Shown piece by piece: positions 41,181 to 64,000 of a stretch of DNA of 64,000 nt (positions are counted from its first letter, which is position 1; every line of letters starts with the position of its first letter). Where the stretch lies: assembly GCA_047495785.1 (NCBI GenBank), contig JBLDXI010000013.1, positions 4,663,704 to 4,727,703 on the forward strand, in the 5' to 3' direction. Origin of the DNA: Lepidodermella squamata (taxonomy: Eukaryota; Animalia; Gastrotricha). The notes under the pieces are model-generated. The model was not told the DNA's origin, did not search any database, and was given only the letters and a program-made list of their open reading frames with translations. Both the position numbers and the translations under genes were made by a program.

Positions 41181-41524
41181 GGAAACATCCTGAAGGAAAA
41201 CTTACCAACAAAATTGATCTCATTCATTATACTCCAACTGTGATATCATTTTTAATAACAAATCCATTCATTATAAATGATTTTATTGCAACGTATGTAT
41301 TGCTTATAATCTTAGCGATTTTAAAATGATAGGTAACACTGCTTATGATTTTCTCTGAGCAACACGATACTGTGATTTTTGACTGATGGTATACTTATAC
41401 AAAGATCAAACAGGCGTCTGTCATTTGAAATATTCGTAATATATTTAAAATAAAGCAATTGCTTATCTATCCAGTAAAATGACCAGAAATGCGAACACGT
41501 CTAATTTCTGTTTAAAATAATGCC

Positions 41525-41646
41525 TCATACGTCTTCTACTTTCCTGAACCTCAACCAGTCAGGTACAGTAAAATCGTCCAGGGAAAAGTTCTCAGTAGAG
41601 TTCGAGGAACAAGGCCTGTTAAGGAACTGACCGCCGATTCGGAACC
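41525..41646 (-). pseudogene. Orphan 3'-terminal fragment of the P4HA-like gene
   Basis: Encodes WFRIGGQFLNRPCSSNSTENFSLDDFTVPDWLRFRKVEDV*, paralogous to 45431-45552; no upstream coding sequence. Confidence 0.8.
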
Positions 41647-42285
41647 AGTTCCGCCAGATTCAACATTATTGAGATACAGCACAAGCATTGAGATACAGCA
41701 TAAGAGTCGCCAATCGACCGCCCAACTCCCTGTTTTCAACTTTCGAGGAGAAGTAGTCAGAATGAGGCCTGTAATGGCCTCCTATACCGTAATTTCCATC
41801 TTGGAATCAAGGTTTGTGTAGTTCAGTTTAACATACATAAACATAATTCGACGCTCAAAATTGAAAAGTAACCTATCAGATTGTTCTAATGATAAATGTG
41901 CCACAAATAAGCGATGATAGTCTTGATTTTGAGTCATGAATAGCTTGAATGATTGAATAATTTCCCCACGTTTTCGACGATCTCTGAATTTTTCGCTGAA
42001 AATTTGAACGAAGGAAATTGAAGTTCACTTTGCAAGATGCCCACCACAAACTTTATTAAAATACCATTCACTCGGATCAATTCAATTGAATAATTTACCA
42101 ACACCATCAAACATGATATGCTAGGCACGAAATTCACGATTTTACGAAGTGGCTGACGCTAAAACCCCACACTGGTTTCTCTAAAGCTAACGTTGATAAA
42201 TATATATAGTACTCATTATTTCACGCAACGATTGCTCTCAGGTTTTCGTAATGCTCGTCCTCTATTGGCGGTCTTAAGGCGGTCC

Positions 42286-43204
42286 TCAGGGTACCTCGAT
42301 GGAGAGACGAGCTGAGGGTTCCCCAACCGCGAGACGTGCTGAAGGTTCCTCGATGGAGAGACGAGCTGTGGGTTCCCCAACCGCGAGACGGGCTGAAGGT
42401 TCCTCAATCGAGAGACGAGCTGAGGGTTCCCCAACTGCTAGACGAGCTGAGGGTTCCCCAACCGCGAGACGGGCTGAAGGTTCCTCAATCGAGAGACGAG
42501 CTGAGGGTTCCCCAACCGCGAGACGGGCTGAAGGTTCCCCAACCGCTAGACGAGCTGAGGGTTCCCCAACCGCGAGACGGGCTGAAGGTTCCTCGATGGA
42601 GAGACGAGCTGTGGGTTCCCCAACCGCGAGACGGGCTGAAGGTTCCTCGATGGAGAGACGAGCTGTGGGTTCCCCAACCGCGAGACGGGCTGAAGGTTCC
42701 TCGATGGAGAGACGAGCTGAGGGTTCCCCAACCGCGAGACGTGCTGAAGGTTCCTCGATGGAGAGACGAGCTGTGGGTTCCCCAACCGCGAGACGGGCTG
42801 AAGGTTCCTCGATGGAGAGACGAGCTGTGGGTTCCCCAACCGCGAGACGGGCTGAAGGTTCCTCGATGGAGAGACGAGCTGTGGGTTCCCCAACCGCGAG
42901 ACGGGCTGAAGGTTCCTCGATGGAGAGACGAGCTGTGGGTTCCCCAACCGCGAGACGGGCTGAAGGTTCCTCGATGGAGAGACGAGCTGAGGGTTCCCCA
43001 ACCGCGAGACGGGCTGAAGGTTCCTCGATGGAGAGACGAGCTGAAGGTTCCTCAATCGAGAGACGAGCTGAGCCAGTTGGATTCGCGCTCGTGGACCACA
43101 CAGCTACTGCGGCCTGAGAAAATTACCTAGTTTTACAACAAAACATGAACCTATCACGGAATGAAACTTACTACTAGCAGCATTGAAACCAAACGCTTGT
43201 TCAT
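42286..43204 (-). CDS. Secreted repeat-peptide precursor, paralog 2 (286 aa, 29 x 9-aa repeats)
   Basis: Exon 43204-43172 (MNKRLVSMLLV), 58-nt GT-AG intron, exon 43113-42286 (AAVAVWSTSANPTG then SARLSIEEP / SARLAVGEP / TARLSIEEP x29). TATAAAA near 43278-43284. Confidence 0.8.
42289..43071. repeat. Coding minisatellite, 27-bp monomer with 54-bp higher-order alternation
   Basis: gagacgagctgwgggttccccaaccgc alternates with gagacgggctgaaggttcctcgatgga. Confidence 0.95.
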
Positions 43205-45430: not shown

Positions 45431-46285
45431 TCATACGTCTTCTACTTTCCTGAACCTCAACCAGTCAGGTACAGTAAAATCGTCCAGGGAAAAGTTCTCA
45501 GTAGTTTTTGAGGAACAAGGCCTGTAAAGGAATTGGCCGCCGATTCGGAACCATTTGTTAGTCACCCATTTTTCACCCCGCAAAACTGGACATCCGCTGT
45601 GGAGCGTCCGCTCATCTGCCACCTCGTTTTTGCGATAGTTGTACCAGAAAATACCGGCCTTCTTAGGAATAAAATCATGCCATAACACGACAAGCGGGTC
45701 CAAGTTGATAACTTCTTCCTTCACTGGTGATAGAATCAGCAAAGGATGCCGACCTCTGTCATCGTAGCGGCAGAAGCGTTTCGGGTCTCTCGCGAGGGCT
45801 TTTAGCTGCACATTTGCTTCGCCATCTCGACATATCTCGTACTCTGATGTCGCTGCTAATTTCTCGGCCGCGGACATCCTTTCCTCCAGAGGCTTTGTGT
45901 CGAAGTCATTTGGCTCGGCAGGTGTTTTCACCTGGGACATGTAGTAATTCTTCCAAGAAGTCAGGTGTTTTAGCAAGTTATCATCGGTTCTTGGCATCTT
46001 GTTTAATGCAAGGTTGCAAAGGAAAAGAGCCTCCAATTTTTTACCAAGGCCGAATGCGGCGTACTGCATGTAGTCGAGGATTTCCGATTCTCGTATCGAG
46101 CCAATTTCGCTGGCATATGTACTGTTGAAAACTCGCCAAGCATTGAGCGCTGCTGCGTAGAGTTCTTCGAACTTCTTGGCATCTGACAGTTCCTGCAACG
46201 GTTTGTACGCTTCGTAGAGTTCAGTTGAAGTTTCTGAACCAGTTGACAACTTGAACGTTAGCAAAAGGATGAGGGCAATACTCAT
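45431..46285 (-). CDS. Prolyl 4-hydroxylase alpha-like protein, intronless, with in-frame deletion of the catalytic core (predicted inactive)
   Basis: Signal peptide; TPR-like substrate-binding region (EILDYMQYAAF..G...EA); YEICR, FCRY....HPLLILSPVKEE....DP.VVLWHDFI; then directly FWYN...DERTLHSGCPVLRGEKWVTNKWF...GQ...RPC. No HxD segment. Confidence 0.8.
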   Translation of the reverse strand: MSIALILLLTFKLSTGSETSTELYEAYKPLQELSDAKKFEELYAAALNAWRVFNSTYASEIGSIRESEILDYMQYAAFGLGKKLEALFLCNLALNKMPRTDDNLLKHLTSWKNYYMSQVKTPAEPNDFDTKPLEERMSAAEKLAATSEYEICRDGEANVQLKALARDPKRFCRYDDRGRHPLLILSPVKEEVINLDPLVVLWHDFIPKKAGIFWYNYRKNEVADERTLHSGCPVLRGEKWVTNKWFRIGGQFLYRPCSSKTTENFSLDDFTVPDWLRFRKVEDV

Positions 46286-46350
46286 TGTAAAAACTTGATA
46301 ACCAGATTTTTGGAGTACTAATGGTTGATGAAATTGAGCACTATAAGTTT

Positions 46351-46395
46351 ATATCCAACGTTTCGGTTATTTTCCATAACCTTCTTCAAGGATAT
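46351..46395 (-). ncRNA. Minimal type-I hammerhead ribozyme-like motif (Penelope type), present in every array unit
   Basis: Minus strand reads atatcc-TTGAAGA-a-GGTTAT-ggaaa-ATAACC-GAAA-CG-TT-ggatat: 6-bp stem I, core with C3U, 6-bp stem II, palindromic AACGTT in place of stem III. Confidence 0.7.
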
Positions 46396-46591
46396 CAAGG
46401 GTAACATTTCCGCATGAAGTTGATATTATAAAATTAAGGCGGAAATTTTAAATTAGCGTTAGTGAGGATTATAAGCCTAATCTGATCCAGTAAGTTGAGC
46501 TATTCTAACTAAAATTTTCTCGGCTTGTTCGACTGCACTTCTCATGAAAGATGGACTCCGTGAAGAGTTTCGCCTTAATCGAATCGAATTG

Positions 46592-46636
46592 GTATCCCTG
46601 AAGATGGTTATGAAAAAGAACCGAAACGTTGGATAT
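46592..46636 (+). ncRNA. Minimal type-I hammerhead ribozyme-like motif (Penelope type), opposite polarity, present in every array unit
   Basis: gtatcc-CTGAAGA-t-GGTT-atgaaaaag-AACC-GAAA-CG-TT-ggatat: canonical CUGANGA/GAAA core with stems I and II. Confidence 0.72.
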
Positions 46637-47213
46637 AAACTTATAGCGCCCAATCTCTTTGTAAAAGGATGTATAATAGGTACTAATAGTCAGTAATTTT
46701 TACATCTTTGCGCCCGAATGAATTTTTTAACCGCTATTTGTTGAATCACCTGCCTGTGTTATTGAATGATGACTGCGTAGAGTTCTTACATCTTTGTAGT
46801 CCGTTAACGCACGCAGCGAACCTATCTGAAGGATGGCGGTCATTACAAAGCATGACAATGGACGGCACCGCAAATAATAAGACTCTCAAGGAGAACTCGG
46901 CGAGCTTCATAGTATCTGAGGATGGAAAAGGCTGAAACGATCGAATTACTTGTGGTCTAATATTTCTCACCTTCAGTTCTATGTATCAGGTGCTTCACCA
47001 AATCTCAACTTTTTCATATCAATATTGATGTAACATTGCTCTCACAATTTTTAAGTGCTATGCTATGCTTGCGCTTGGATTTCAGGATAGATGAGCGATC
47101 AGTATGTGAAGGATCCAGCCTATAAATTCATGTCAATCTTGCAGTTTCTCTCGAAATTCTCGCCGGCAAATATAACGTGAACGCTCATATGATGGATCGC
47201 CCTTCTGGCACTA

Positions 47214-47972
47214 TCAGACCCCAGAAAGTTTGGAAACGCCCAACAAGCTGCCGGTGCTCAGCCGAGGGACTAACAAGTATGGCAAAGAGTTAAAGCAGGC
47301 TTGTCGAAATTTAGCCGTTGCTTTTTCGATCAGCTGTGTGCCGTACTTCTTAGGAATAAAATCATGCCATAACACGACAAGCGGGTCCAAGTTGATAACT
47401 TCTTCCTTCACTGGTGATAGAATCAGCAAAGGATGCCGACCTCTGTCATCGTAGCGGCAGAAGCGTTTCGGGTCTCTCGCGAGGGCTTTTAGCTGCACAT
47501 TTGCTTCGCCATCTCGACATATCTCGTACTCTGATGTCGCTGCTAATTTCTCGGCCGCGGACATCCTTTCCTCCAGAGGCTTTGTGTCGAAGTCATTTGG
47601 CTCGGCAGGTGTTTTCACCTGGGACATGTAGTAATTCTTCCAAGAAGTCAGGTGTTTTAGCAAGTTATCATCGGTTCTTGGCATCTTGTTTAATGCAAGG
47701 TTGCAAAGGAAAAGAGCCTCCAATTTTTTACCAAGGCCGAATGCGGCGTACTGCATGTAGTCGAGGATTTCCGATTCTCGTATCGAGCCAATTTCGCTGG
47801 CATATGTACTGTTGAAAACTCGCCAAGCATTGAGCGCTGCTGCGTAGAGTTCTTCGAACTTCTTGGCATCTGACAGTTCCTGCAACGGTTTGTACGCTTC
47901 GTAGAGTTCAGTTGAAGTTTCTGAACCAGTTGACAACTTGAACGTTAGCAAAAGGATGAGGGCAATACTCAT
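47214..47972 (-). CDS. Truncated P4HA-like ORF (252 aa), array copy
   Basis: Same N-terminal 209 aa as 45431-46285; P4H-like to ...ATAKFRQA, then an unrelated tail. Confidence 0.65.
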   Translation of the reverse strand: MSIALILLLTFKLSTGSETSTELYEAYKPLQELSDAKKFEELYAAALNAWRVFNSTYASEIGSIRESEILDYMQYAAFGLGKKLEALFLCNLALNKMPRTDDNLLKHLTSWKNYYMSQVKTPAEPNDFDTKPLEERMSAAEKLAATSEYEICRDGEANVQLKALARDPKRFCRYDDRGRHPLLILSPVKEEVINLDPLVVLWHDFIPKKYGTQLIEKATAKFRQACFNSLPYLLVPRLSTGSLLGVSKLSGV

Positions 47973-48900
47973 TGTAAAAACTTGATAACCAGATTTTTGG
48001 AGTACTAATGGTTGATGAAATTGAGCACTATAAGTTTATATCCAACGTTTCGGTTATTTTCCATAACCTTCTTCAAGGATATCAAGGGTAACATTTCCGC
48101 ATGAAGTTGATATTATAAAATTAAGGCGGAAATTTTAAATTAGCGTTAGTGAGGATTATAAGCCTAATCTGATCCAGTAAGTTGAGCTATTCTAACTAAA
48201 ATTTTCTCGGCTTGTTCGACTGCACTTCTCATGAAAGATGGACTCCGTGAAGAGTTTCGCCTTAATCGAATCGAATTGGTATCCCTGAAGATGGTTATGA
48301 AAAAGAACCGAAACGTTGGATATAAACTTATAGCGCCCAATCTCTTTGTAAAAGGATGTATAATAGGTACTAATAGTCAGTAATTTTTACATCTTTGCGC
48401 CCGAATGAATTTTTTAACCGCTATTTGTTGAATCACCTGCCTGTGTTATTGAATGATGACTGCGTAGAGTTCTTACATCTTTGTAGTCCGTTAACGCACG
48501 CAGCGAACCTATCTGAAGGATGGCGGTCATTACAAAGCATGACAATGGACGGCACCGCAAATAATAAGACTCTCAAGGAGAACTCGGCGAGCTTCATAGT
48601 ATCTGAGGATGGAAAAGGCTGAAACGATCGAATTACTTGTGGTCTAATATTTCTCACCTTCAGTTCTATGTATCAGGTGCTTCACCAAATCTCAACTTTT
48701 TCATATCAATATTGATGTAACATTGCTCTCACAATTTTTAAGTGCTATGCTATGCTTGCGCTTGGATTTCAGGATAGATGAGCGATCAGTATGTGAAGGA
48801 TCCAGCCTATAAATTCATGTCAATCTTGCAGTTTCTCTCGAAATTCTCGCCGGCAAATATAACGTGAACGCTCATATGATGGATCGCCCTTCTGGCACTA

Positions 48901-49659
48901 TCAGACCCCAGAAAGTTTGGAAACGCCCAACAAGCTGCCGGTGCTCAGCCGAGGGACTAACAAGTATGGCAAAGAGTTAAAGCAGGCTTGTCGAAATTTA
49001 GCCGTTGCTTTTTCGATCAGCTGTGTGCCGTACTTCTTAGGAATAAAATCATGCCATAACACGACAAGCGGGTCCAAGTTGATAACTTCTTCCTTCACTG
49101 GTGATAGAATCAGCAAAGGATGCCGACCTCTGTCATCGTAGCGGCAGAAGCGTTTCGGGTCTCTCGCGAGGGCTTTTAGCTGCACATTTGCTTCGCCATC
49201 TCGACATATCTCGTACTCTGATGTCGCTGCTAATTTCTCGGCCGCGGACATCCTTTCCTCCAGAGGCTTTGTGTCGAAGTCATTTGGCTCGGCAGGTGTT
49301 TTCACCTGGGACATGTAGTAATTCTTCCAAGAAGTCAGGTGTTTTAGCAAGTTATCATCGGTTCTTGGCATCTTGTTTAATGCAAGGTTGCAAAGGAAAA
49401 GAGCCTCCAATTTTTTACCAAGGCCGAATGCGGCGTACTGCATGTAGTCGAGGATTTCCGATTCTCGTATCGAGCCAATTTCGCTGGCATATGTACTGTT
49501 GAAAACTCGCCAAGCATTGAGCGCTGCTGCGTAGAGTTCTTCGAACTTCTTGGCATCTGACAGTTCCTGCAACGGTTTGTACGCTTCGTAGAGTTCAGTT
49601 GAAGTTTCTGAACCAGTTGACAACTTGAACGTTAGCAAAAGGATGAGGGCAATACTCAT
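48901..49659 (-). CDS. Truncated P4HA-like ORF, array copy
   Basis: Translation identical to 47214-47972. Confidence 0.65.
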   Translation of the reverse strand: MSIALILLLTFKLSTGSETSTELYEAYKPLQELSDAKKFEELYAAALNAWRVFNSTYASEIGSIRESEILDYMQYAAFGLGKKLEALFLCNLALNKMPRTDDNLLKHLTSWKNYYMSQVKTPAEPNDFDTKPLEERMSAAEKLAATSEYEICRDGEANVQLKALARDPKRFCRYDDRGRHPLLILSPVKEEVINLDPLVVLWHDFIPKKYGTQLIEKATAKFRQACFNSLPYLLVPRLSTGSLLGVSKLSGV

Positions 49660-50587
49660 TGTAAAAACTTGATAACCAGATTTTTGGAGTACTAATGGTT
49701 GATGAAATTGAGCACTATAAGTTTATATCCAACGTTTCGGTTATTTTCCATAACCTTCTTCAAGGATATCAAGGGTAACATTTCCGCATGAAGTTGATAT
49801 TATAAAATTAAGGCGGAAATTTTAAATTAGCGTTAGTGAGGATTATAAGCCTAATCTGATCCAGTAAGTTGAGCTATTCTAACTAAAATTTTCTCGGCTT
49901 GTTCGACTGCACTTCTCATGAAAGATGGACTCCGTGAAGAGTTTCGCCTTAATCGAATCGAATTGGTATCCCTGAAGATGGTTATGAAAAAGAACCGAAA
50001 CGTTGGATATAAACTTATAGCGCCCAATCTCTTTGTAAAAGGATGTATAATAGGTACTAATAGTCAGTAATTTTTACATCTTTGCGCCCGAATGAATTTT
50101 TTAACCGCTATTTGTTGAATCACCTGCCTGTGTTATTGAATGATGACTGCGTAGAGTTCTTACATCTTTGTAGTCCGTTAACGCACGCAGCGAACCTATC
50201 TGAAGGATGGCGGTCATTACAAAGCATGACAATGGACGGCACCGCAAATAATAAGACTCTCAAGGAGAACTCGGCGAGCTTCATAGTATCTGAGGATGGA
50301 AAAGGCTGAAACGATCGAATTACTTGTGGTCTAATATTTCTCACCTTCAGTTCTATGTATCAGGTGCTTCACCAAATCTCAACTTTTTCATATCAATATT
50401 GATGTAACATTGCTCTCACAATTTTTAAGTGCTATGCTATGCTTGCGCTTGGATTTCAGGATAGATGAGCGATCAGTATGTGAAGGATCCAGCCTATAAA
50501 TTCATGTCAATCTTGCAGTTTCTCTCGAAATTCTCGCCGGCAAATATAACGTGAACGCTCATATGATGGATCGCCCTTCTGGCACTA

Positions 50588-51346
50588 TCAGACCCCAGAA
50601 AGTTTGGAAACGCCCAACAAGCTGCCGGTGCTCAGCCGAGGGACTAACAAGTATGGCAAAGAGTTAAAGCAGGCTTGTCGAAATTTAGCCGTTGCTTTTT
50701 CGATCAGCTGTGTGCCGTACTTCTTAGGAATAAAATCATGCCATAACACGACAAGCGGGTCCAAGTTGATAACTTCTTCCTTCACTGGTGATAGAATCAG
50801 CAAAGGATGCCGACCTCTGTCATCGTAGCGGCAGAAGCGTTTCGGGTCTCTCGCGAGGGCTTTTAGCTGCACATTTGCTTCGCCATCTCGACATATCTCG
50901 TACTCTGATGTCGCTGCTAATTTCTCGGCCGCGGACATCCTTTCCTCCAGAGGCTTTGTGTCGAAGTCATTTGGCTCGGCAGGTGTTTTCACCTGGGACA
51001 TGTAGTAATTCTTCCAAGAAGTCAGGTGTTTTAGCAAGTTATCATCGGTTCTTGGCATCTTGTTTAATGCAAGGTTGCAAAGGAAAAGAGCCTCCAATTT
51101 TTTACCAAGGCCGAATGCGGCGTACTGCATGTAGTCGAGGATTTCCGATTCTCGTATCGAGCCAATTTCGCTGGCATATGTACTGTTGAAAACTCGCCAA
51201 GCATTGAGCGCTGCTGCGTAGAGTTCTTCGAACTTCTTGGCATCTGACAGTTCCTGCAACGGTTTGTACGCTTCGTAGAGTTCAGTTGAAGTTTCTGAAC
51301 CAGTTGACAACTTGAACGTTAGCAAAAGGATGAGGGCAATACTCAT
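50588..51346 (-). CDS. Truncated P4HA-like ORF, array copy
   Basis: Identical translation. Confidence 0.65.
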   Translation of the reverse strand: MSIALILLLTFKLSTGSETSTELYEAYKPLQELSDAKKFEELYAAALNAWRVFNSTYASEIGSIRESEILDYMQYAAFGLGKKLEALFLCNLALNKMPRTDDNLLKHLTSWKNYYMSQVKTPAEPNDFDTKPLEERMSAAEKLAATSEYEICRDGEANVQLKALARDPKRFCRYDDRGRHPLLILSPVKEEVINLDPLVVLWHDFIPKKYGTQLIEKATAKFRQACFNSLPYLLVPRLSTGSLLGVSKLSGV

Positions 51347-52274
51347 TGTAAAAACTTGATAACCAGATTTTTGGAGTACTAATGGTTGATGAAATTGAGC
51401 ACTATAAGTTTATATCCAACGTTTCGGTTATTTTCCATAACCTTCTTCAAGGATATCAAGGGTAACATTTCCGCATGAAGTTGATATTATAAAATTAAGG
51501 CGGAAATTTTAAATTAGCGTTAGTGAGGATTATAAGCCTAATCTGATCCAGTAAGTTGAGCTATTCTAACTAAAATTTTCTCGGCTTGTTCGACTGCACT
51601 TCTCATGAAAGATGGACTCCGTGAAGAGTTTCGCCTTAATCGAATCGAATTGGTATCCCTGAAGATGGTTATGAAAAAGAACCGAAACGTTGGATATAAA
51701 CTTATAGCGCCCAATCTCTTTGTAAAAGGATGTATAATAGGTACTAATAGTCAGTAATTTTTACATCTTTGCGCCCGAATGAATTTTTTAACCGCTATTT
51801 GTTGAATCACCTGCCTGTGTTATTGAATGATGACTGCGTAGAGTTCTTACATCTTTGTAGTCCGTTAACGCACGCAGCGAACCTATCTGAAGGATGGCGG
51901 TCATTACAAAGCATGACAATGGACGGCACCGCAAATAATAAGACTCTCAAGGAGAACTCGGCGAGCTTCATAGTATCTGAGGATGGAAAAGGCTGAAACG
52001 ATCGAATTACTTGTGGTCTAATATTTCTCACCTTCAGTTCTATGTATCAGGTGCTTCACCAAATCTCAACTTTTTCATATCAATATTGATGTAACATTGC
52101 TCTCACAATTTTTAAGTGCTATGCTATGCTTGCGCTTGGATTTCAGGATAGATGAGCGATCAGTATGTGAAGGATCCAGCCTATAAATTCATGTCAATCT
52201 TGCAGTTTCTCTCGAAATTCTCGCCGGCAAATATAACGTGAACGCTCATATGATGGATCGCCCTTCTGGCACTA

Positions 52275-53033
52275 TCAGACCCCAGAAAGTTTGGAAACGC
52301 CCAACAAGCTGCCGGTGCTCAGCCGAGGGACTAACAAGTATGGCAAAGAGTTAAAGCAGGCTTGTCGAAATTTAGCCGTTGCTTTTTCGATCAGCTGTGT
52401 GCCGTACTTCTTAGGAATAAAATCATGCCATAACACGACAAGCGGGTCCAAGTTGATAACTTCTTCCTTCACTGGTGATAGAATCAGCAAAGGATGCCGA
52501 CCTCTGTCATCGTAGCGGCAGAAGCGTTTCGGGTCTCTCGCGAGGGCTTTTAGCTGCACATTTGCTTCGCCATCTCGACATATCTCGTACTCTGATGTCG
52601 CTGCTAATTTCTCGGCCGCGGACATCCTTTCCTCCAGAGGCTTTGTGTCGAAGTCATTTGGCTCGGCAGGTGTTTTCACCTGGGACATGTAGTAATTCTT
52701 CCAAGAAGTCAGGTGTTTTAGCAAGTTATCATCGGTTCTTGGCATCTTGTTTAATGCAAGGTTGCAAAGGAAAAGAGCCTCCAATTTTTTACCAAGGCCG
52801 AATGCGGCGTACTGCATGTAGTCGAGGATTTCCGATTCTCGTATCGAGCCAATTTCGCTGGCATATGTACTGTTGAAAACTCGCCAAGCATTGAGCGCTG
52901 CTGCGTAGAGTTCTTCGAACTTCTTGGCATCTGACAGTTCCTGCAACGGTTTGTACGCTTCGTAGAGTTCAGTTGAAGTTTCTGAACCAGTTGACAACTT
53001 GAACGTTAGCAAAAGGATGAGGGCAATACTCAT
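52275..53033 (-). CDS. Truncated P4HA-like ORF, array copy
   Basis: Identical translation. Confidence 0.65.
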   Translation of the reverse strand: MSIALILLLTFKLSTGSETSTELYEAYKPLQELSDAKKFEELYAAALNAWRVFNSTYASEIGSIRESEILDYMQYAAFGLGKKLEALFLCNLALNKMPRTDDNLLKHLTSWKNYYMSQVKTPAEPNDFDTKPLEERMSAAEKLAATSEYEICRDGEANVQLKALARDPKRFCRYDDRGRHPLLILSPVKEEVINLDPLVVLWHDFIPKKYGTQLIEKATAKFRQACFNSLPYLLVPRLSTGSLLGVSKLSGV

Positions 53034-53961
53034 TGTAAAAACTTGATAACCAGATTTTTGGAGTACTAATGGTTGATGAAATTGAGCACTATAAGTTTAT
53101 ATCCAACGTTTCGGTTATTTTCCATAACCTTCTTCAAGGATATCAAGGGTAACATTTCCGCATGAAGTTGATATTATAAAATTAAGGCGGAAATTTTAAA
53201 TTAGCGTTAGTGAGGATTATAAGCCTAATCTGATCCAGTAAGTTGAGCTATTCTAACTAAAATTTTCTCGGCTTGTTCGACTGCACTTCTCATGAAAGAT
53301 GGACTCCGTGAAGAGTTTCGCCTTAATCGAATCGAATTGGTATCCCTGAAGATGGTTATGAAAAAGAACCGAAACGTTGGATATAAACTTATAGCGCCCA
53401 ATCTCTTTGTAAAAGGATGTATAATAGGTACTAATAGTCAGTAATTTTTACATCTTTGCGCCCGAATGAATTTTTTAACCGCTATTTGTTGAATCACCTG
53501 CCTGTGTTATTGAATGATGACTGCGTAGAGTTCTTACATCTTTGTAGTCCGTTAACGCACGCAGCGAACCTATCTGAAGGATGGCGGTCATTACAAAGCA
53601 TGACAATGGACGGCACCGCAAATAATAAGACTCTCAAGGAGAACTCGGCGAGCTTCATAGTATCTGAGGATGGAAAAGGCTGAAACGATCGAATTACTTG
53701 TGGTCTAATATTTCTCACCTTCAGTTCTATGTATCAGGTGCTTCACCAAATCTCAACTTTTTCATATCAATATTGATGTAACATTGCTCTCACAATTTTT
53801 AAGTGCTATGCTATGCTTGCGCTTGGATTTCAGGATAGATGAGCGATCAGTATGTGAAGGATCCAGCCTATAAATTCATGTCAATCTTGCAGTTTCTCTC
53901 GAAATTCTCGCCGGCAAATATAACGTGAACGCTCATATGATGGATCGCCCTTCTGGCACTA

Positions 53962-54720
53962 TCAGACCCCAGAAAGTTTGGAAACGCCCAACAAGCTGCC
54001 GGTGCTCAGCCGAGGGACTAACAAGTATGGCAAAGAGTTAAAGCAGGCTTGTCGAAATTTAGCCGTTGCTTTTTCGATCAGCTGTGTGCCGTACTTCTTA
54101 GGAATAAAATCATGCCATAACACGACAAGCGGGTCCAAGTTGATAACTTCTTCCTTCACTGGTGATAGAATCAGCAAAGGATGCCGACCTCTGTCATCGT
54201 AGCGGCAGAAGCGTTTCGGGTCTCTCGCGAGGGCTTTTAGCTGCACATTTGCTTCGCCATCTCGACATATCTCGTACTCTGATGTCGCTGCTAATTTCTC
54301 GGCCGCGGACATCCTTTCCTCCAGAGGCTTTGTGTCGAAGTCATTTGGCTCGGCAGGTGTTTTCACCTGGGACATGTAGTAATTCTTCCAAGAAGTCAGG
54401 TGTTTTAGCAAGTTATCATCGGTTCTTGGCATCTTGTTTAATGCAAGGTTGCAAAGGAAAAGAGCCTCCAATTTTTTACCAAGGCCGAATGCGGCGTACT
54501 GCATGTAGTCGAGGATTTCCGATTCTCGTATCGAGCCAATTTCGCTGGCATATGTACTGTTGAAAACTCGCCAAGCATTGAGCGCTGCTGCGTAGAGTTC
54601 TTCGAACTTCTTGGCATCTGACAGTTCCTGCAACGGTTTGTACGCTTCGTAGAGTTCAGTTGAAGTTTCTGAACCAGTTGACAACTTGAACGTTAGCAAA
54701 AGGATGAGGGCAATACTCAT
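53962..54720 (-). CDS. Truncated P4HA-like ORF, array copy
   Basis: Identical translation. Confidence 0.65.
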   Translation of the reverse strand: MSIALILLLTFKLSTGSETSTELYEAYKPLQELSDAKKFEELYAAALNAWRVFNSTYASEIGSIRESEILDYMQYAAFGLGKKLEALFLCNLALNKMPRTDDNLLKHLTSWKNYYMSQVKTPAEPNDFDTKPLEERMSAAEKLAATSEYEICRDGEANVQLKALARDPKRFCRYDDRGRHPLLILSPVKEEVINLDPLVVLWHDFIPKKYGTQLIEKATAKFRQACFNSLPYLLVPRLSTGSLLGVSKLSGV

Positions 54721-55648
54721 TGTAAAAACTTGATAACCAGATTTTTGGAGTACTAATGGTTGATGAAATTGAGCACTATAAGTTTATATCCAACGTTTCG
54801 GTTATTTTCCATAACCTTCTTCAAGGATATCAAGGGTAACATTTCCGCATGAAGTTGATATTATAAAATTAAGGCGGAAATTTTAAATTAGCGTTAGTGA
54901 GGATTATAAGCCTAATCTGATCCAGTAAGTTGAGCTATTCTAACTAAAATTTTCTCGGCTTGTTCGACTGCACTTCTCATGAAAGATGGACTCCGTGAAG
55001 AGTTTCGCCTTAATCGAATCGAATTGGTATCCCTGAAGATGGTTATGAAAAAGAACCGAAACGTTGGATATAAACTTATAGCGCCCAATCTCTTTGTAAA
55101 AGGATGTATAATAGGTACTAATAGTCAGTAATTTTTACATCTTTGCGCCCGAATGAATTTTTTAACCGCTATTTGTTGAATCACCTGCCTGTGTTATTGA
55201 ATGATGACTGCGTAGAGTTCTTACATCTTTGTAGTCCGTTAACGCACGCAGCGAACCTATCTGAAGGATGGCGGTCATTACAAAGCATGACAATGGACGG
55301 CACCGCAAATAATAAGACTCTCAAGGAGAACTCGGCGAGCTTCATAGTATCTGAGGATGGAAAAGGCTGAAACGATCGAATTACTTGTGGTCTAATATTT
55401 CTCACCTTCAGTTCTATGTATCAGGTGCTTCACCAAATCTCAACTTTTTCATATCAATATTGATGTAACATTGCTCTCACAATTTTTAAGTGCTATGCTA
55501 TGCTTGCGCTTGGATTTCAGGATAGATGAGCGATCAGTATGTGAAGGATCCAGCCTATAAATTCATGTCAATCTTGCAGTTTCTCTCGAAATTCTCGCCG
55601 GCAAATATAACGTGAACGCTCATATGATGGATCGCCCTTCTGGCACTA

Positions 55649-58600
55649 TCAGACCCCAGAAAGTTTGGAAACGCCCAACAAGCTGCCGGTGCTCAGCCGA
55701 GGGACTAACAAGTATGGCAAAGAGTTAAAGCAGGCTTGTCGAAATTTAGCCGTTGCTTTTTCGATCAGCTGTGTGCCGTACTTCTTAGGAATAAAATCAT
55801 GCCATAACACGACAAGCGGGTCCAAGTTGATAACTTCTTCCTTCACTGGTGATAGAATCAGCAAAGGATGCCGACCTCTGTCATCGTAGCGGCAGAAGCG
55901 TTTCGGGTCTCTCGCGAGGGCTTTTAGCTGCACATTTGCTTCGCCATCTCGACATATCTCGTACTCTGATGTCGCTGCTAATTTCTCGGCCGCGGACATC
56001 CTTTCCTCCAGAGGCTTTGTGTCGAAGTCATTTGGCTCGGCAGGTGTTTTCACCTGGGACATGTAGTAATTCTTCCAAGAAGTCAGGTGTTTTAGCAAGT
56101 TATCATCGGTTCTTGGCATCTTGTTTAATGCAAGGTTGCAAAGGAAAAGAGCCTCCAATTTTTTACCAAGGCCGAATGCGGCGTACTGCATGTAGTCGAG
56201 GATTTTCCGATTCTCGTATCGAGCCAATTTCGCTGGCATATGTACTGTTGAAAACTCGCCAAGCATTGAGCGCTGCTGCGTAGAGTTCTTCGAGCTTCTT
56301 GGCATCTGACAGTTCCTGCAACGGTTTGTACGCTTCGTAGAGTTCAGTTGAAGTTTCTGAACCAGTTGACAACTTGAACGTTAGCAAAAGGATGAGGGCA
56401 ATACTCATTGTAAAAACTTGATAACCAGATTTTTGGAGTACTAATGGTTGATGAAATTGAGCACTATAAGTTTATATCCAACGTTTCGGTTATTTTCCAT
56501 AACCTTCTTCAAGGATATCAAGGGTAACATTTCCGCATGAAGTTGATATTATAAAATTAAGGCGGAAATTTTAAATTAGCGTTAGTGAGGATTATAAGCC
56601 TAATCTGATCCAGTAAGTTGAGCTATTCTAACTAAAATTTTCTCGGCTTGTTCGACTGCACTTCTCATGAAAGATGGACTCCGTGAAGAGTTTCGCCTTA
56701 ATCGAATCGAATTGGTATCCCTGAAGATGGTTATGAAAAGAACCGAAACGTTGGATATAAACTTATAGCGCCCAATCTCTTTGTAAAAGGATGTATAATA
56801 GGTACTAATAGTCAGTAATTTTTACATCTTTGCGCCCGAATGAATTTTTTAACCGCTATTTGTTGAATCACCTGCCTGTGTTATTGAATGATGACTGCGT
56901 AGAGTTCTTACATCTTTGTAGTCCGTTAACGCACGCAGCGAACCTATCTGAAGGATGGCGGTCATTACAAAGCATGACAATGGACGGCACCGCAAATAAT
57001 AAGACTCTCAAGGAGAACTCGGCGAGCTTCATAGTATCTGAGGATGGAAAAGGCTGAAACGATCGAATTACTTGTGGTCTAATATTTCTCACCTTCAGTT
57101 CTATGTATCAGGTGCTTCACCAAATCTCAACTTTTTCATATCAATATTGATGTAACATTGCTCTCACAATTTTTAAGTGCTATGCTATGCTTGCGCTTGG
57201 ATTCAGGATAGATGAGCGATCAGTATGTGAAGGATCCAGCCTATAAATTCATGTCAATCTTGCAGTTTCTCTCGAAATTCTCGCCGGCAAATATAACGTG
57301 AACGCTCATATGATGGATCGCCCTTCTGGCACTATCAGACCCCAGAAAGTTTGGAAACGCCCAACAAGCTGCCGGTGCTCAGCCGAGGGACTAACAAGTA
57401 TGGCAAAGAGTTAAAGCAGGCTTGTCGAAATTTAGCCGTTGCTTTTTTCGATCAGCTGTGTGCCGTACTTCTTAGGAATAAAATCATGCCATAACACGAC
57501 AAGCGGGTCCAAGTTGATAACTTCTTCCTTCACTGGTGATAGAAATCAGCAAAGGATGCCGACCTCTGTCATCGTAGCGGCAGAAGCGTTTCGGGTCTCT
57601 CGCGAGGGCTTTTAGCTGCACATTTGCTTCGCCATCTCGACATATCTCGTACTCTGATGTCGCTGCTAATTTCTCGGCCGCGGACATCCTTTCCTCCAGA
57701 GGCTTTGTGTCGAAGTCATTTGGCTCGCAGGTGTTTTCACCTGGGACATGTAGTAATTCTTCCAAGAAGTCAGGTGTTTTAGCAAGTTATCATCGGTTCT
57801 TGGCATCTTGTTTAATGCAAGGTTGCAAAGGAAAAGAGCCTCCAATTTTTTACCAAGGCCGAATGCGGCGTACTGCATGTAGTCGAGGATTTCCGATTCT
57901 CGTATCGAGCCAATTTCGCTGGCATATGTACTGTTGAAAACTCGCCAAGCATTGAGCGCTGCTGCGTAGAGTTCTTCGAACTTCTTGGCATCTGACAGTT
58001 CCTGCAACGGTTTGTACGCTTCGTAGAGTTCAGTTGAAGTTTCTGAACCAGTTGACAACTTGAACGTTAGCAAAAGGATGAGGGCAATACTCATTGTAAA
58101 AACTTGATAACCAGATTTTTGGAGTACTAATGGTTGATGAAATTGAGCACTATAAGTTTATATCCAACGTTTCGGTTATTTTCCATAACCTTCTTCAAGG
58201 ATATCAAGGGTAACATTTCCGCATGAAGTTGATATTATAAAATTAAGGCGGAAATTTTAAATTAGCGTTAGTGAGGATTATAAGCCTAATCTGATCCAGT
58301 AAGTTGAGCTATTCTAACTAAAATTTTCTCGGCTTGTTCGACTGCACTTCTCATGAAAGATGGACTCCGTGAAGAGTTTCGCCTTAATCGAATCGAATTG
58401 TATCCCTGAAGATGGTTATGAAAAAGAACCGAAACGTTGGATATAAACTTATAGCGCCCAATCTCTTTGTAAAAGGATGTATAATAGGTACTAATAGTCA
58501 GTAATTTTTACATCTTTGCGCCCGAATGAATTTTTTAACCGCTATTTGTTGAATCACCTGCCTGTGTTATTGAATGATGACTGCGTAGAGTTCTTACATC

Positions 58601-59780
58601 TTTGTAGTCCGTTAACGCACGCAGCGAACCTATCTGAAGGATGGCGGTCATTACAAAGCATGACAATGGACGGCACCGCAAATAATAAGACTCTCAAGGA
58701 GAACTCGCGAGCTTCATAGTATCTGAGGATGGAAAAGGCTGAAACGATCGAATTACTTGTGGTCTAATATTTCTCACCTTCAGTTCTATGTATCAGGTGC
58801 TTCACCAAATCTCAACTTTTTCATATCAATATTGATGTAACATTGCTCTCACAATTTTTAAGTGCTATGCTATGCTTGCGCTTGGATTTCAGGATAGATG
58901 AGCGATCAGTATGTGAAGGATCCAGCCTATAAATTCATGTCAATCTTGCAGTTTCTCTCGAAATTCTCGCCGGCAAATATAACGTGAACGCTCATATGAT
59001 GGATCGCCCTTCTGGCACTATCAGACCCCAGAAAGTTTGGAAACGCCCAACAAGCTGCCGGTGCTCAGCCGAGGGACTAACAAGTATGGCAAAGAGTTAA
59101 AGCAGGCTTGTCGAAATTTAGCCGTTGCTTTTTCGATCAGCTGTGTGCCGTACTTCTTAGGAATAAAATCATGCCATAACACGACAAGCGGGTCAAGTTG
59201 ATAACTTCTTCCTTCACTGGTGATAGAATCAGCAAAGGATGCCGACCTCTGTCATCGTAGCGGCAGAAGCGTTTCGGGTCTCTCGCGAGGGCTTTTAGCT
59301 GCACATTTGCTTCGCCATCTCGACATATCTCGTACTCTGATGTCGCTGCTAATTTCTCGGCCGCGGACATCCTTTCCTCCAGAGGCTTTGTGTCGAAGTC
59401 ATTTGGCTCGGCCAGGTGTTTTCACCTGGGACATGTAGTAATTCTTCCAAGAAGTCAGGTGTTTTAGCAAGTTATCATCGGTTCTTGGCATCTTGTTTAA
59501 TGCAAGGTTGCAAAAGGAAAAGAGCCTCCAATTTTTTACCAAGGCCGAATGCGGCGTACTGCATGTAGTCGAGGATTTCCGATTCTCGTATCGAGCCAAT
59601 TTCGCTGGCATATGTACTGTTGAAAACTCGCCAAGCATTGAGCGCTGCTGCGTAGAGTTCTTCGAACTTCTTGGCATCTGACAGTTCCTGCAACGGTTTG
59701 TACGCTTCGTAGAGTTCAGTTGAAGTTTCTGAACCAGTTGACAACTTGAACGTTAGCAAAAGGATGAGGGCAATACTCAT
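55649..59780 (-). pseudogene. Three further P4HA-like array copies with single-base frameshifts (probably consensus errors)
   Basis: Starts at 56408, 58094 and 59780; indels mostly in homopolymers (gattttcc, gcttttttcg, caaaaggaaa). Confidence 0.6.
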
Positions 59781-61002
59781 TGTAAAAACTTGATAACCAG
59801 ATTTTTGGAGTACTAATGGCTGATGAAATTGAGCACTATAAGTTTATATCCAACGTTTCGGTTATTTTCCATAACCTTCTTCAAGGATATCAAGGGTAAC
59901 ATTTCCGCATGAAGTTGATATTATAAAATTAAGGCGGAAATTTTAAATTAGCGTTAGTGAGGATTATAAGCCTAATCTGATCCAGTAAGTTGAGCTATTC
60001 TAACTAAAATTTTCTCGGCTTGTTCGACTGCACTTCTCATGAAAGATGGACTCCGTGAAGAGTTTCGCCTTAATCGAATCGAATTGGTATCCCTGAAGAT
60101 GGTTATGAAAAGAACCGAAACGTTGGATATAAACTTATAGCGCCCAATCTCTTTGTAAAAGGATGTATAATAGGTACTAATAGTCAGTAATTTTTACATC
60201 TTTGCGCCCGAATGAATTTTTTAACCGCTATTTGTTGAATCACCTGCCTGTGTTATTGAATGATGACTGCGTAGAGTTCTTACATCTTTGTAGTCCGTTA
60301 ACGCACGCAGCGAACCTATCTGAAGGATGGCGGTCATTACAAAGCATGACAATGACGGCACCGCAAATAATAAGACTCTCAAGGAGAACTCGGCGAGCTT
60401 CATAGTATCTGAGGATGGAAAAGGCTGAAACGATCGAATTACTTGTGGTCTAATATTTCTCACCTTCAGTTCTATGTATCAGGTGCTTCACCAAATCTCA
60501 ACTTTTTCATATCAATATTGATGTAACATTGCTCTCACAATTTTTAAGTGCTATGCTATGCTTGCGCTTGGATTTCAGGATAGATGAGCGATCAGTATGT
60601 GAAGGATCCAGCCTATAAATTCATGTCAATCTTGCAGTTTCTCTCGAAATTCTCGCCGGCAAATATAACGTGAACGCTCATATGATGGATCGCCCTTCTG
60701 GCACTATCAGACCCCAGAAAGTTTGGAAACGCCCAACAAGCTGCCGGTGCTCAGCCGAGGGACTAACAAGTATGGCAAAGAGTTAAAGCAGGCTTGTCGA
60801 AATTTAGCCGTTGCTTTTTCGATCAGCTGTGTGCCGTACTTCTTAGGAATAAAATCATGCCATAACACGACAAGCGGGTCCAAGTTGATAACTTCTTCCT
60901 TCACTGGTGATAGAATCAGCAAAGGATGCCGACCTCTGTCATCGTAGCGGCAGAAGCGTTTCGGGTCTCTCGCGAGGGCTTTTAGCTGCACATTTGCTTC
61001 GC

Positions 61003-63983
61003 CATCTATCCTGAAATCCAAGCGCAAGCATAGCATAGCACTTAAAAATTGTGAGAGCAATGTTACATCAATATTGATATGAAAAAGTTGAGATTTGGTG
61101 AAGCACCTGATACATAGAACTGAAGGTGAGAAATATTAGACCACAAGTAATTCGATCGTTTCAGCCTTTTCCATCCTCAGATACTATGAAGCTCGCCGAG
61201 TTCTCCTTGAGAGTCTTATTATTTGCGGTGCCGTCCATTGTCATGCTTTGTAATGACCGCCATCCTTCAGATAGGTTCGCTGCGTGCGTTAACGGACTAC
61301 AAAGATGTAAGAACTCTACGCAGTCATCATTCAATAACACAGGCAGGTGATTCAACAATAGCGGTTAAAAAATTCATTCGGGCGCAAAGATGTAAAAATT
61401 ACTGACTATTAGTACCTATTATACATCCTTTTACAAAGAGATTGGGCGCTATAAGTTTATATCCAACGTTTCGGTTCTTTTTCATAACCATCTTCAGGGA
61501 TACCAATTCGATTCGATTAAGGCGAAACTCTTCACGGAGTCCATCTTTCATGAGAAGTGCAGTCGAACAAGCCGAGAAAATTTTAGTTAGAATAGCTCAA
61601 CTTACTGGATCAGATTAGGCTTATAATCCTCACTAACGCTAATTTAAAATTTCCGCCTTAATTTTATAATATCAACTTCATGCGGAAATGTTACCCTTGA
61701 TATCCTTGAAGAAGGTTATGGAAAATAACCGAAACGTTGGATATAAACTTATAGTGCTCAATTTCATCAGCCATTAGTACTCCAAAAATCTGGTTATCAA
61801 GTTTTTACAATGAGTATTGCCCTCATCCTTTTGCTAACGTTCAAGTTGTCAACTGGTTCAGAACTTCAACTGAACTCTACGAAGCGTACAAACCGTTGCA
61901 GGAACTGTCAGATGCCAAGAAGTTCGAAGAACTCTACGCAGCAGCGCTCAATGCTTGGCGAGTTTTCAACAGTACATATGCCAGCGAAATTGGCTCGATA
62001 CGAGAATCGGAAATCCTCGACTACATGCAGTACGCCGCATTCGGCCTTGGTAAAAAATTGGAGGCTCTTTTCCTTTGCAACCTTGCATTAAACAAGATGC
62101 CAAGAACCGATGATAACTTGCTAAAACACCTGACTTCTTGGAAGAATTACTACATGTCCCAGGTGAAAACACCTGCCGAGCCAAATGACTTCGACACAAA
62201 GCCTCTGGAGGAAAGGATGTCCGCGGCCGAGAAATTAGCAGCGACATCAGAGTACGAGATATGTCGAGATGGCGAAGCAAATGTGCAGCTAAAAGCCCTC
62301 GCGAGAGACCCGAAACGCTTCTGCCGCTACGATGACAGAGGTCGGCATCCTTTGCTGATTCTATCACCAGTGAAGGAAGAAGTTATCAACTTGGACCCGC
62401 TTGTCGTGTTATGGCATGATTTTATTCCTAAGAAGTACGGCACACAGCTGATCGAAAAGCAACGGCTAAATTTCGACAAGCCTGCTTTAACTCTTTGCCA
62501 TACTTGTTAGTCCCTCGGCTGAGCACCGGCAGCTTGTTGGGCGTTTCCAAACTTTCTGGGGTCTGATAGTGCCAGAAGGGCGATCCATCATATGAGCGTT
62601 CACGTTATATTTGCCGGCGAGAATTTCGAGAGAAACTGCAAGATTGACATGAATTTATAGGCTGGATCCTTCACATACTGATCGCTCATCTATCCTGAAA
62701 TCCAAGCGCAAGCATAGCATAGCACTTAAAAATTGTGAGAGCAATGTTACATCAATATTGATATGAAAAAGTTGAGATTTGGTGAAGCACCTGATACATA
62801 GAACTGAAGGTGAGAAATATTAGACCACAAGTAATTCGATCGTTTCAGCCTTTTCCATCCTCAGATACTATGAAGCTCGCCGAGTTCTCCTTGAGAGTCT
62901 TATTATTTGCGGTGCCGTCCATTGTCATGCTTTGTAATGACCGCCATCCTTCAGATAGGTTCGCTGCGTGCGTTAACGGACTACAAAGATGTAAGAACTC
63001 TACGCAGTCATCATTCAATAACACAGGCAGGTGATTCAACAAATAGCGGTTAAAAAATTCATTCGGGCGCAAAGATGTAAAAATTACTGACTATTAGTAC
63101 CTATTATACATCCTTTTACAAAGAGATTGGGCGCTATAAGTTTTATATCCAACGTTTCGGTTCTTTTTCATAACCATCTTCAGGGATACCAATTCGATTC
63201 GATTAAGGCGAAACTCTTCACGGAGTCCATCTTTCATGAGAAGTGCAGTCGAACAAGCCGAGAAAATTTTAGTTAGAATAGCTCAACTTACTGGATCAGA
63301 TTAGGCTTATAATCCTCACTAACGCTAATTTAAAATTTCCGCCTTAATTTTATAATATCAACTTCATGCGGAAATGTTACCCTTGATATCCTTGAAGAAG
63401 GTTATGGAAAATAACCGAAACGTTGGATATAAACTTATAGTGCTCAATTTCATCAACCATTAGTACTCCAAAAATCTGGTTATCAAGTTTTTACAATGAG
63501 TATTGCCCTCATCCTTTTGCTAACGTTCAAGTTGTCAACTGGTTCAGAAACTTCAACTGAACTCTACGAAGCGTACAAACCGTTGCAGGAACTGTCAGAT
63601 GCCAAGAAGTTCGAAGAACTCTACGCAGCAGCGCTCAATGCTTGGCGAGTTTTCAACAGTACATATGCCAGCGAAATTGGCTCGATACGAGAATCGGAAA
63701 TCCTCGACTACATGCAGTACGCCGCATTCGGCCTTGGTAAAAAATTGGAGGCTCTTTTCCTTTGCAACCTTGCATTAAACAAGATGCCAAGAACCGATGA
63801 TAACTTGCTAAAACACCTGACTTCTTGGAAGAATTACTACATGTCCCAGGTGAAAACACCTGCCGAGCCAAATGACTTCGACACAAAGCCTCTGGAGGAA
63901 AGGATGTCCGCGGCCGAGAAATAGCAGCGACATCAGAGTACGAGATATGTCGAGATGGCGAAGCAAATGTGCAGCTAAAAGCC
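61003..63983 (+). repeat. Inverted continuation of the 1687-bp array (about 1.8 units; P4HA-like ORF starts at 61810 and 63496)
   Basis: Sequence from 61003 is the reverse complement of sequence ending at about 60586; plus-strand ORFs mirror the minus-strand ones. Confidence 0.95.
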
Positions 63984-64000
63984 ACTCTCACGAGATGTGT

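Follow-up and report, generated by a model that had tools for sequence, protein, structure and literature searches.

A tandem array carrying paired minimal hammerhead motifs at a P4HA locus of Lepidodermella squamata probably arose by in-place DNA duplication around a Penelope-like relic

Introduction

The minimal hammerhead ribozymes (min-HHRs) of Penelope-like elements (PLEs) have been reported as pairs of motifs located on opposite strands and 100-700 bp apart, with U3-A8 covariation as a published natural variant of the core, and their cleavage in vitro is poor, dimers included (Cervera & De la Pena 2014, PMC4209133). The insertions of PLEs show extreme 5' truncation, an adjoining inverted 5'-truncated copy and a one-sided tail of 30-40 bp (Craig et al. 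2021, PMC8557442). Animal non-long-terminal-repeat (non-LTR) retrozymes are tandem type-I hammerhead repeats that yield circular RNAs (bioRxiv 10.64898/2026.07.22.740005). The locus studied here lies in a stretch of 64,000 nucleotides from the gastrotrich Lepidodermella squamata (contig JBLDXI010000013.1, here C13, positions 4,663,704 to 4,727,703; the whole stretch is termed the window), where a P4HA gene is occupied by a tandem array of 1687-bp units, each carrying a minimal type-I hammerhead motif on either strand.

A first-pass annotation of the window, made from the sequence alone, had taken this array for a retrozyme-like or Penelope-like amplification unit with a captured host open reading frame (ORF). 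Comparison with a colinear contig of the same genome, C74, leads to a different account: the array very probably represents an in situ, DNA-level tandem duplication that was later expanded by unequal exchange, with the PLE hammerheads as passengers.

Results

The 1687-bp array was confirmed as nine direct units at 45654-60833 that are 99.6-100% identical to one another. The period of the array lies outside the range of Tandem Repeats Finder, and the units were delimited by a repeat search and by blastn of one unit against the window. The relationship between the array and its single-copy counterpart was then read from contig C74, on which positions 87074-134989 are colinear with window positions 52-47305 over ~47 kb at 92-97% identity. 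This contig holds a single counterpart of the unit (C74:133317-134989; 1673 bp, 97.7% identity), and is most simply the other haplotype, the alternative being a large segmental duplicate. According to the C74 comparison, the amplified segment extends from codon 224 of P4HA to ~1.05 kb upstream of the ATG. Only one joint in the array is novel with respect to C74, namely that at 47305/47308, which recurs each 1687 bp and at which C74:134989 is fused to C74:133317 with a 2-nt filler. The joint falls inside the ORF, 12 codons past 'PKK', and is separated by ~675 bp from one predicted hammerhead cut (46630/46631) and by ~950 bp from the other (46357/46356). Both cut sites lie in contiguous sequence in the single-copy state on C74.

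The array was found to occupy the P4HA gene's own locus, with the reading frame of its last unit continuing into the gene's unique 3' end, and nothing had therefore been captured. A genome search with the 647 bp of the unit that lie outside the gene and the PLE relic found them only in the array and on C74, with no dispersed copies of the unit; as this unique part is present nowhere else in the genome, the unit never moved. Breakpoints inside the ORF and ~1 kb upstream of it, joined through a filler at a distance from the hammerhead sites, in a unit present at no other locus, are not those of the amplification unit that had been proposed. They point instead to a dispersed insertion passively duplicated by DNA recombination, which is the outcome that the first-pass annotation had itself set against its proposal.

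Read support was taken from Logan contigs of three sequencing runs, none of them on record as RNA, which show the presence of a joint and not ends, strand or a reliable copy number. In run X1, a 307-nt contig (record 5) spans the duplication joint without mismatch and at a depth equal to that of the rest of the unit, and the unit contigs are several-fold deeper than the flank contigs. In run X2, which comes from another study and is labelled as a different organism, a 79-nt contig (record 16) spans the same joint, and a 95-nt contig spans an in-frame deletion present in the terminal P4HA copy (described below). The duplication joint, spanned in X1 and X2 from two studies, and the deletion joint, spanned in X2, are therefore real DNA features. 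Run X2 also contains two 'opposite strands' joints, between 47169-47209 and 48743-48790, at a depth of about 7.6; these do not match the inversion joint of the assembly.

Variation between the units was examined along the array. Units 1-6 are mutually identical, and the variation that is present consists almost exclusively of 1-nt indels in short homopolymers, limited to units 7-9 and to a set of inverted units beyond them. There are just two substitutions, one of which is common to unit 9 and the first inverted unit. The ninth unit is followed by a partial tenth (60834-61007, unit coordinates 6-174) that terminates at an inversion joint, after which about 1.8 units in inverted orientation (60999-64000, comprising 60999-62435 and 62441-63995) reach the end of contig C13. 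This inversion was absent from the earlier annotation and brings the assembled array to at least 11 units. The inversion joint at 61003-61007 is asymmetric, passing from unit coordinate 174 to 1445 reversed, with a 5-bp CATCT microhomology, and the inverted block is either a genuine template-switch inversion or an assembly chimera.

The P4HA reading frames were compared with the counterpart on C74, which is an uninterrupted 413-aa single-exon ORF with a complete 2OG-Fe(II) oxygenase domain (Pfam 2OG-FeII_Oxy_3 at 6e-13; PDB 7zsc at 2.5e-39 over residues 151-390). A Pfam search of both P4HA ORFs of the window (284 and 252 aa) gave no match, and their identity was taken from PDB sequence matches together with the intact C74 gene. 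The terminal copy (45431-46285, minus strand; 284 aa) consists of the N-terminal 212 aa joined in frame to the last 72 aa. It has lost ~376 bp at a CTAAGAAG microhomology (45654-45666), and with them ~129 aa of the catalytic 2OG-Fe(II) core, the HxD motif among them; comparison with C74 places the 376-bp deletion, in frame, between two CTAAGAAG repeats. Accordingly, the alignment of this ORF to the human P4HA2 catalytic domain (PDB 7zsc; E = 2e-17) is split in two, with chain residues 73-204 skipped. The internal ORF, one per unit (47214-47972 in the first, minus strand; 252 aa), contains P4HA residues 1-224 followed by 28 unrelated codons, which are far-upstream sequence read across the joint. 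Each unit had been thought to hold a whole ORF, and what it holds is truncated at 252 aa and is without the catalytic domain. The collagen-type P4HA architecture, that is, an N-terminal and peptide-binding region followed by a 2OG-Fe(II) domain with HxD...H and Lys, is present in the C74 gene and incomplete in the window copies. The C13 chromosome is thus shown to hold only truncated predicted reading frames of P4HA.

This paralogue belongs to a very large family: 137 six-frame matches to P4HA were obtained in the genome, with clusters on contigs C2, C42, C10 and C15 and with many of the members being single large ORFs. An isolated P4HA 3'-end fragment was also noted at ~41117-41807 of the window (minus strand), ~4 kb downstream of the gene and with 84% amino acid identity to residues 241-284. 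Because C13 and C74 both have it, the fragment is older than the array.

The hairpin carried in each unit was next assigned to a PLE insertion (46293-46658, minus strand) that is 5'-truncated and has an adjoining inverted fragment, on the evidence of a target-site duplication (TSD), the boundaries of a dispersed family and an ORF relic. The insertion is 366 bp long, is bounded by the 8-bp direct repeat TTGTAAAA (46285-46292 and 46659-46666), and has its inner end 8 bp upstream of the P4HA ATG. Its parts are the last ~26 codons of a reverse transcriptase-endonuclease (RT-EN), a 3' untranslated region (3'UTR) with a hammerhead, a 35-nt tail, and the adjoining inverted fragment of 69 nt, which is the plus-strand hammerhead (46591-46654). 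The C-terminal relic of the RT-EN, with its stop codon (46505-46585, minus strand), was recognized by similarity to the protein of a full element of the genome, L046: 21 aa encoded at 46529-46591 (minus strand) are 81% identical to residues 785-805 of the 809-aa L046 protein and are followed by a stop codon. These 21-26 codons are the sole trace of an RT in the window, in agreement with the earlier statement that none is encoded there. The 35-nt 3' tail (46294-46329, minus strand) is present at the ATG-proximal end only and is common to a dispersed copy, L020. An X2 contig that covers the start of the ORF ceases to match at 46292, the inner edge of the left TSD, and continues for 30 more letters; the sample may contain the site in its empty, pre-insertion form, or the break may be a feature of a transcript.

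The hairpin region matches ~15 dispersed places in the genome at ~80% identity, each consisting of a single arm plus ~200 bp, and the longer of these copies, L014 and L015, run upstream into PLE protein remnants reaching residues 643-801. An identity of the inverted repeat as a miniature inverted-repeat transposable element was ruled out, as the dispersed copies are single-armed and continue into the PLE ORF. A genome search for an autonomous PLE revealed elements with a near-identical hammerhead core; in its body, the intact PLE resembles the relic only in that core (85% over 40 nt) and at the end of the ORF. L046 (G000:C13:1588001-1596000, 2262-5625; C13:1.59 Mb) has an 809-aa RT ORF (RVT_1 at 2e-11) that lies between two inverted repeats (222 and 185 bp, 100% identical), each of which contains a hammerhead core almost identical to that of the window, and it is apparently a young PLE. 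The ORF of a second PLE family, L049, matches RVT_1 and GIY-YIG and has its own hammerhead in a matching layout. The (-,+) layout of paired hammerheads around the RT ORF of L046 recurs at many other loci.

The arrangement matches that of the PLE insertions described in PMC8557442, and the unit hairpin is therefore a dead, 5'-truncated copy of a PLE, situated 8 bp before the start codon. The Penelope-type assignment made previously is upheld, with minimal hammerheads in an inverted, pseudo-LTR-like arrangement. The possibility that P4HA is itself a PLE-borne retrogene was ruled out, since the TSD shows that the relic entered pre-existing upstream sequence and other P4HA paralogues are also single large ORFs. 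Elsewhere in the genome, at G000:C46:1252680-1256535, one minus-strand hammerhead core is followed by three plus-strand cores exactly 1350 bp apart. Two candidate readings of this series are a true partial tandem of a PLE and an array of retrozyme type that is in phase with the ribozyme.

The arms of the inverted repeat (46330-46398 and 46589-46657) are 69 nt long, 88% complementary and spaced by 190 nt, with one pair in each unit, and the presence of a minimal type-I hammerhead motif on each strand of every unit was confirmed. The motif on the P4HA strand (46333-46396, minus) has a predicted cut at 46357/46356, which is 71 nt from the ATG at 46285, a 6-bp helix I, a 6-bp helix II and U3 with G8. 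The motif antisense to P4HA (46591-46654, plus) has a predicted cut at 46630/46631, a consensus CUGAAGA core and a 4-bp helix II. Both cut sites, and the distance to the ATG, had been placed correctly in the first-pass annotation. The plus arm is ordered as stem I, CUGAAGA, an extra U, helix II GGUU/AACC, GAAA, CG, UU and stem I; the minus arm follows the same layout, yet has UUGAAGA, an extra A and the longer helix II. The core boxes of PLE min-HHRs, CUGANGA...GAAA...UH, are thus present in type-I order in both arms, the minus arm deviating by U for C at position 3. Both arms also have an unpaired nucleotide between A9 and G10.1, a G10.1-C11.1 pair, and a palindromic 15.2-16.2 (ACGU) that replaces helix III. 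The hammerhead topology was the minimum-free-energy fold of each 50-nt arm (z = -3.9 and -1.5).

A strict version of the motif pattern matched 33 sites across the genome and a looser version matched 118, as compared with 0 for the reversed control of either, which excludes a chance origin of the motifs. The matches sort into families, with helix II varying in sequence and remaining completely paired. By eye, at least seven distinct, fully paired helix II sequences were present among the matches listed (GGUUAU/AUAACC, GGUCC/GGACC, GGCUC/GAGCC, GGUAC/GUACC, GGCAC/GUGCC, GGCCAC/GUGGCC and GGGUAC/GUACCC). The Rfam hammerhead models gave no match in the window at the gathering score and none in two units at E <= 10, and over the whole genome the best score for Hammerhead_1 (RF00163) was 18.7 bits, against a cut-off of 34, at a place outside the window. 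Such non-detection is expected, because the motifs are without helix III, and is read as a limit of the models and not as evidence against the motif.

The differences between the two arms had been advanced as preserving the pairing. They number eight, which is too few to show selection, and the argument has no statistical weight. Among them are a change from an A-U to a G-U pair in stem I, the loss of the fifth pair of helix II, a replacement of the catalytic C3 by U, and three changes outside the motif. In classic mutagenesis, a lone C3U change in the core is strongly deleterious to hammerhead cleavage. A literature search on a U3.G8 core yielded nothing citable beyond the U3-A8 covariation in PMC4209133. 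Efficient present-day cleavage of array transcripts by the predicted motifs would be unlikely, because of the weak in vitro activity of such motifs, published examples of which cleave only as dimers (PMC4209133), and because of the U3 change in the sense arm.

Two further features of the window were recorded. A complete U3 snoRNA gene is present at 375-602 on the plus strand (Rfam RF00012, 107.7 bits, E = 5.6e-23), and a 54-bp tandem repeat of 14 copies (94% matches) lies at 42304-43071, its copy number differing on C74.

Discussion

The history best supported by these data begins with the insertion of a 5'-truncated PLE copy 8 bp upstream of the ATG of an intronless P4HA paralogue, which, as read from the sequences, left the 8-bp TSD. 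The state that preceded duplication, with one copy and an intact 413-aa gene, survives on C74. On C13, a 1.69-kb segment was next duplicated head to tail; the non-homologous joint with its 2-nt filler is visible in the array, and the process behind it is inferred. The number of units then rose, presumably by unequal exchange between sister chromatids or homologues or by replication slippage, as the near-identity of the units suggests, and exchange or slippage would in turn keep the units near-identical. Finally, the gene-proximal copy lost 376 bp of the catalytic core, in frame, at the short CTAAGAAG repeat, again as read from the sequences. The hammerheads were copied once per unit, and neither set the limits of the unit nor helped to make the array.

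Some points weigh against this account or limit it. The window ends at the end of contig C13, inside the array, and the distal boundary of the array is not seen on this chromosome. In k-mer depth, the unit contigs exceed the flanks by a factor of only about 4-7, as against at least 11 assembled units, and the copy number and the inverted block are those of the assembled contigs. Contig C74 could in principle be a collapsed derivative and not the ancestral state, in which case the event would still be at the DNA level. Finally, the predicted hammerheads may be active and the transcripts of the array may be processed at the present day.

It is also conceivable, if improbable, that the relic has been exapted without any role in amplification. 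In this interpretation the P4HA copies would draw their promoter or 5' leader from the PLE relic, with the sense hammerhead trimming or destabilizing the 5'UTR or the antisense one cutting antisense read-through, which would give the motifs a part in how the array is expressed. Only 8 bp separate the relic from the ATG, and any transcript start must therefore fall within it or beyond, and the Penelope pseudo-LTR contains a transcription start (PMC8557442). In addition, the 328-bp hairpin of the array is 100% identical on C74, as compared with a 2.3% difference in the rest of the unit. Note, however, that 328 difference-free bp at 2.3% divergence are a mild excess only, for which gene conversion could also account, and that the sense motif carries the U3 core change. 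Moreover, the X2 contigs, which may be RNA, cover the ORF and neither the PLE relic nor the 650 bp upstream, the matching ending at 46292; were they RNA, this would also speak against a leader within the relic.

An assembly artefact was considered next. If the array, or much of its length together with its inverted end, had come from long-read mis-assembly at a contig end, there would truly be one or a few copies. The termination of the contig within the array, the homopolymer indels of the distal units, which are typical of poor polishing, the asymmetric inversion joint with its 5 bp of microhomology, and the low ratio of unit to flank k-mer depth would all be consistent with such an error. 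Against it, the duplication joint was found mismatch-free in X1 contigs at unit-level depth and again in X2, from another study, and the unit contigs are several-fold deeper than the flanks. The multi-copy array is therefore real and an artefact very improbable, with doubt confined to the exact length and the inverted block.

It is similarly very doubtful that an array born at the DNA level now acts as a coding, retrozyme-like locus, with read-through transcripts of several units uniting PLE hammerheads in one RNA and being cut into 1687-nt RNAs, possibly circularized. Each such RNA could encode a signal-peptide-bearing, catalytically dead N-terminal protein of P4HA, and a locus of this kind, if true, would have taken by accident a first step in the direction of a ribozyme element that carries a gene.

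The last explanation, in which hammerhead-cut 1687-nt monomers of a coding, ambisense, retrozyme-like unit were reverse-transcribed in trans by a PLE enzyme and so amplified a captured gene fragment, would draw on the PLE-type motifs on both strands of each unit, on the autonomous PLEs with a near-identical core in the genome, and on the tandem and inverted structures that PLEs form and the host genes that they are said sometimes to retrotranspose in trans (PMC8557442), but it is extremely unlikely and largely refuted as the origin of the array, because the single-copy colinear locus places the joint off the ribozyme site and has one motif per strand, so that no unit-length RNA could exist before the first duplication, because no second locus or dispersed unit copy is found, and because the array is continuous with its parent gene through the in-frame fusion to its 3' end; the U3 opposite G8 in the sense-strand motif and the poor in vitro cleavage by PLE minimal hammerheads, even as dimers (PMC4209133), count against it as well.

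Had the array been a protein-coding, ambisense retrozyme amplifying a host gene, it would have represented a new class of element, and the evidence shows otherwise. With in-place duplication as the preferred explanation, the array adds one more example to phenomena already known: a PLE relic that contains minimal hammerheads, multiplied passively through a tandem structural variant. It provides a clean, dissected case of a PLE hairpin relic, with a pair of minimal hammerheads facing opposite ways, that had settled 8 bp short of a start codon and was then brought to at least 11 copies by a structural variant that the colinear C74 does not have. On the one chromosome that carries it, the variant inactivates this P4HA paralogue, a member of a very large gene family. 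The case also calls for caution in surveys of ribozymes and retrozymes, as tandem repeats with one hammerhead per unit can arise passively; the discriminating test for a retrozyme call is the joint of the array compared with the single-copy allele, and not tandem hammerhead spacing alone.

The predicted hammerhead motifs of the array closely resemble the PLE min-HHRs of Cervera & De la Pena (PMC4209133), which likewise have CUGANGA and GAAA boxes, a G10.1-C11.1 pair and a palindromic ACGU in place of helix III. Further points of likeness are a longer helix II (6 bp in one arm here), the opposite-strand pairs 100-700 bp apart, and their occurrence mostly in truncated PLE relics, as here. They differ in that one arm here has U3 with G8 instead of the reported U3-A8. 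Helix I has 6 bp in the array motifs and 3 bp in the related autonomous element present in the genome.

The architecture of the insertion resembles that described for PLEs (PMC8557442) in its extreme 5' truncation to ~26 codons and the 3'UTR, in the inverted 69-nt fragment abutting the 5' end, and in the 35-nt one-sided tail with a target-site duplication; in contrast to those insertions, the relic copy here is without an RT. With animal non-LTR retrozymes (bioRxiv 10.64898/2026.07.22.740005) the array shares its tandem arrangement, a type-I hammerhead in every unit and the PLE derivation of the motif. However, those retrozymes are non-coding mobile units found at several loci, whereas the unit of the array is 1687 bp of mostly unique host sequence with a gene fragment, at one locus. 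In those retrozymes the monomer ends and the phase of the array are set by the cleavage site, whereas the joint of this array, at 47305/47308, is 650-950 bp from the sites.

The closest likeness in structure is to an ordinary tandem segmental duplication, or copy-number variation, of the 5' end of a gene. Shared with it are an in situ array for which a colinear single-copy allele exists, a joint with filler or microhomology, units that are nearly identical, truncation of the gene copies and a secondary microhomology deletion. Nothing essential differs, and what is unusual here is the size of the assembled array, at least 11 units, and its terminal inverted block.

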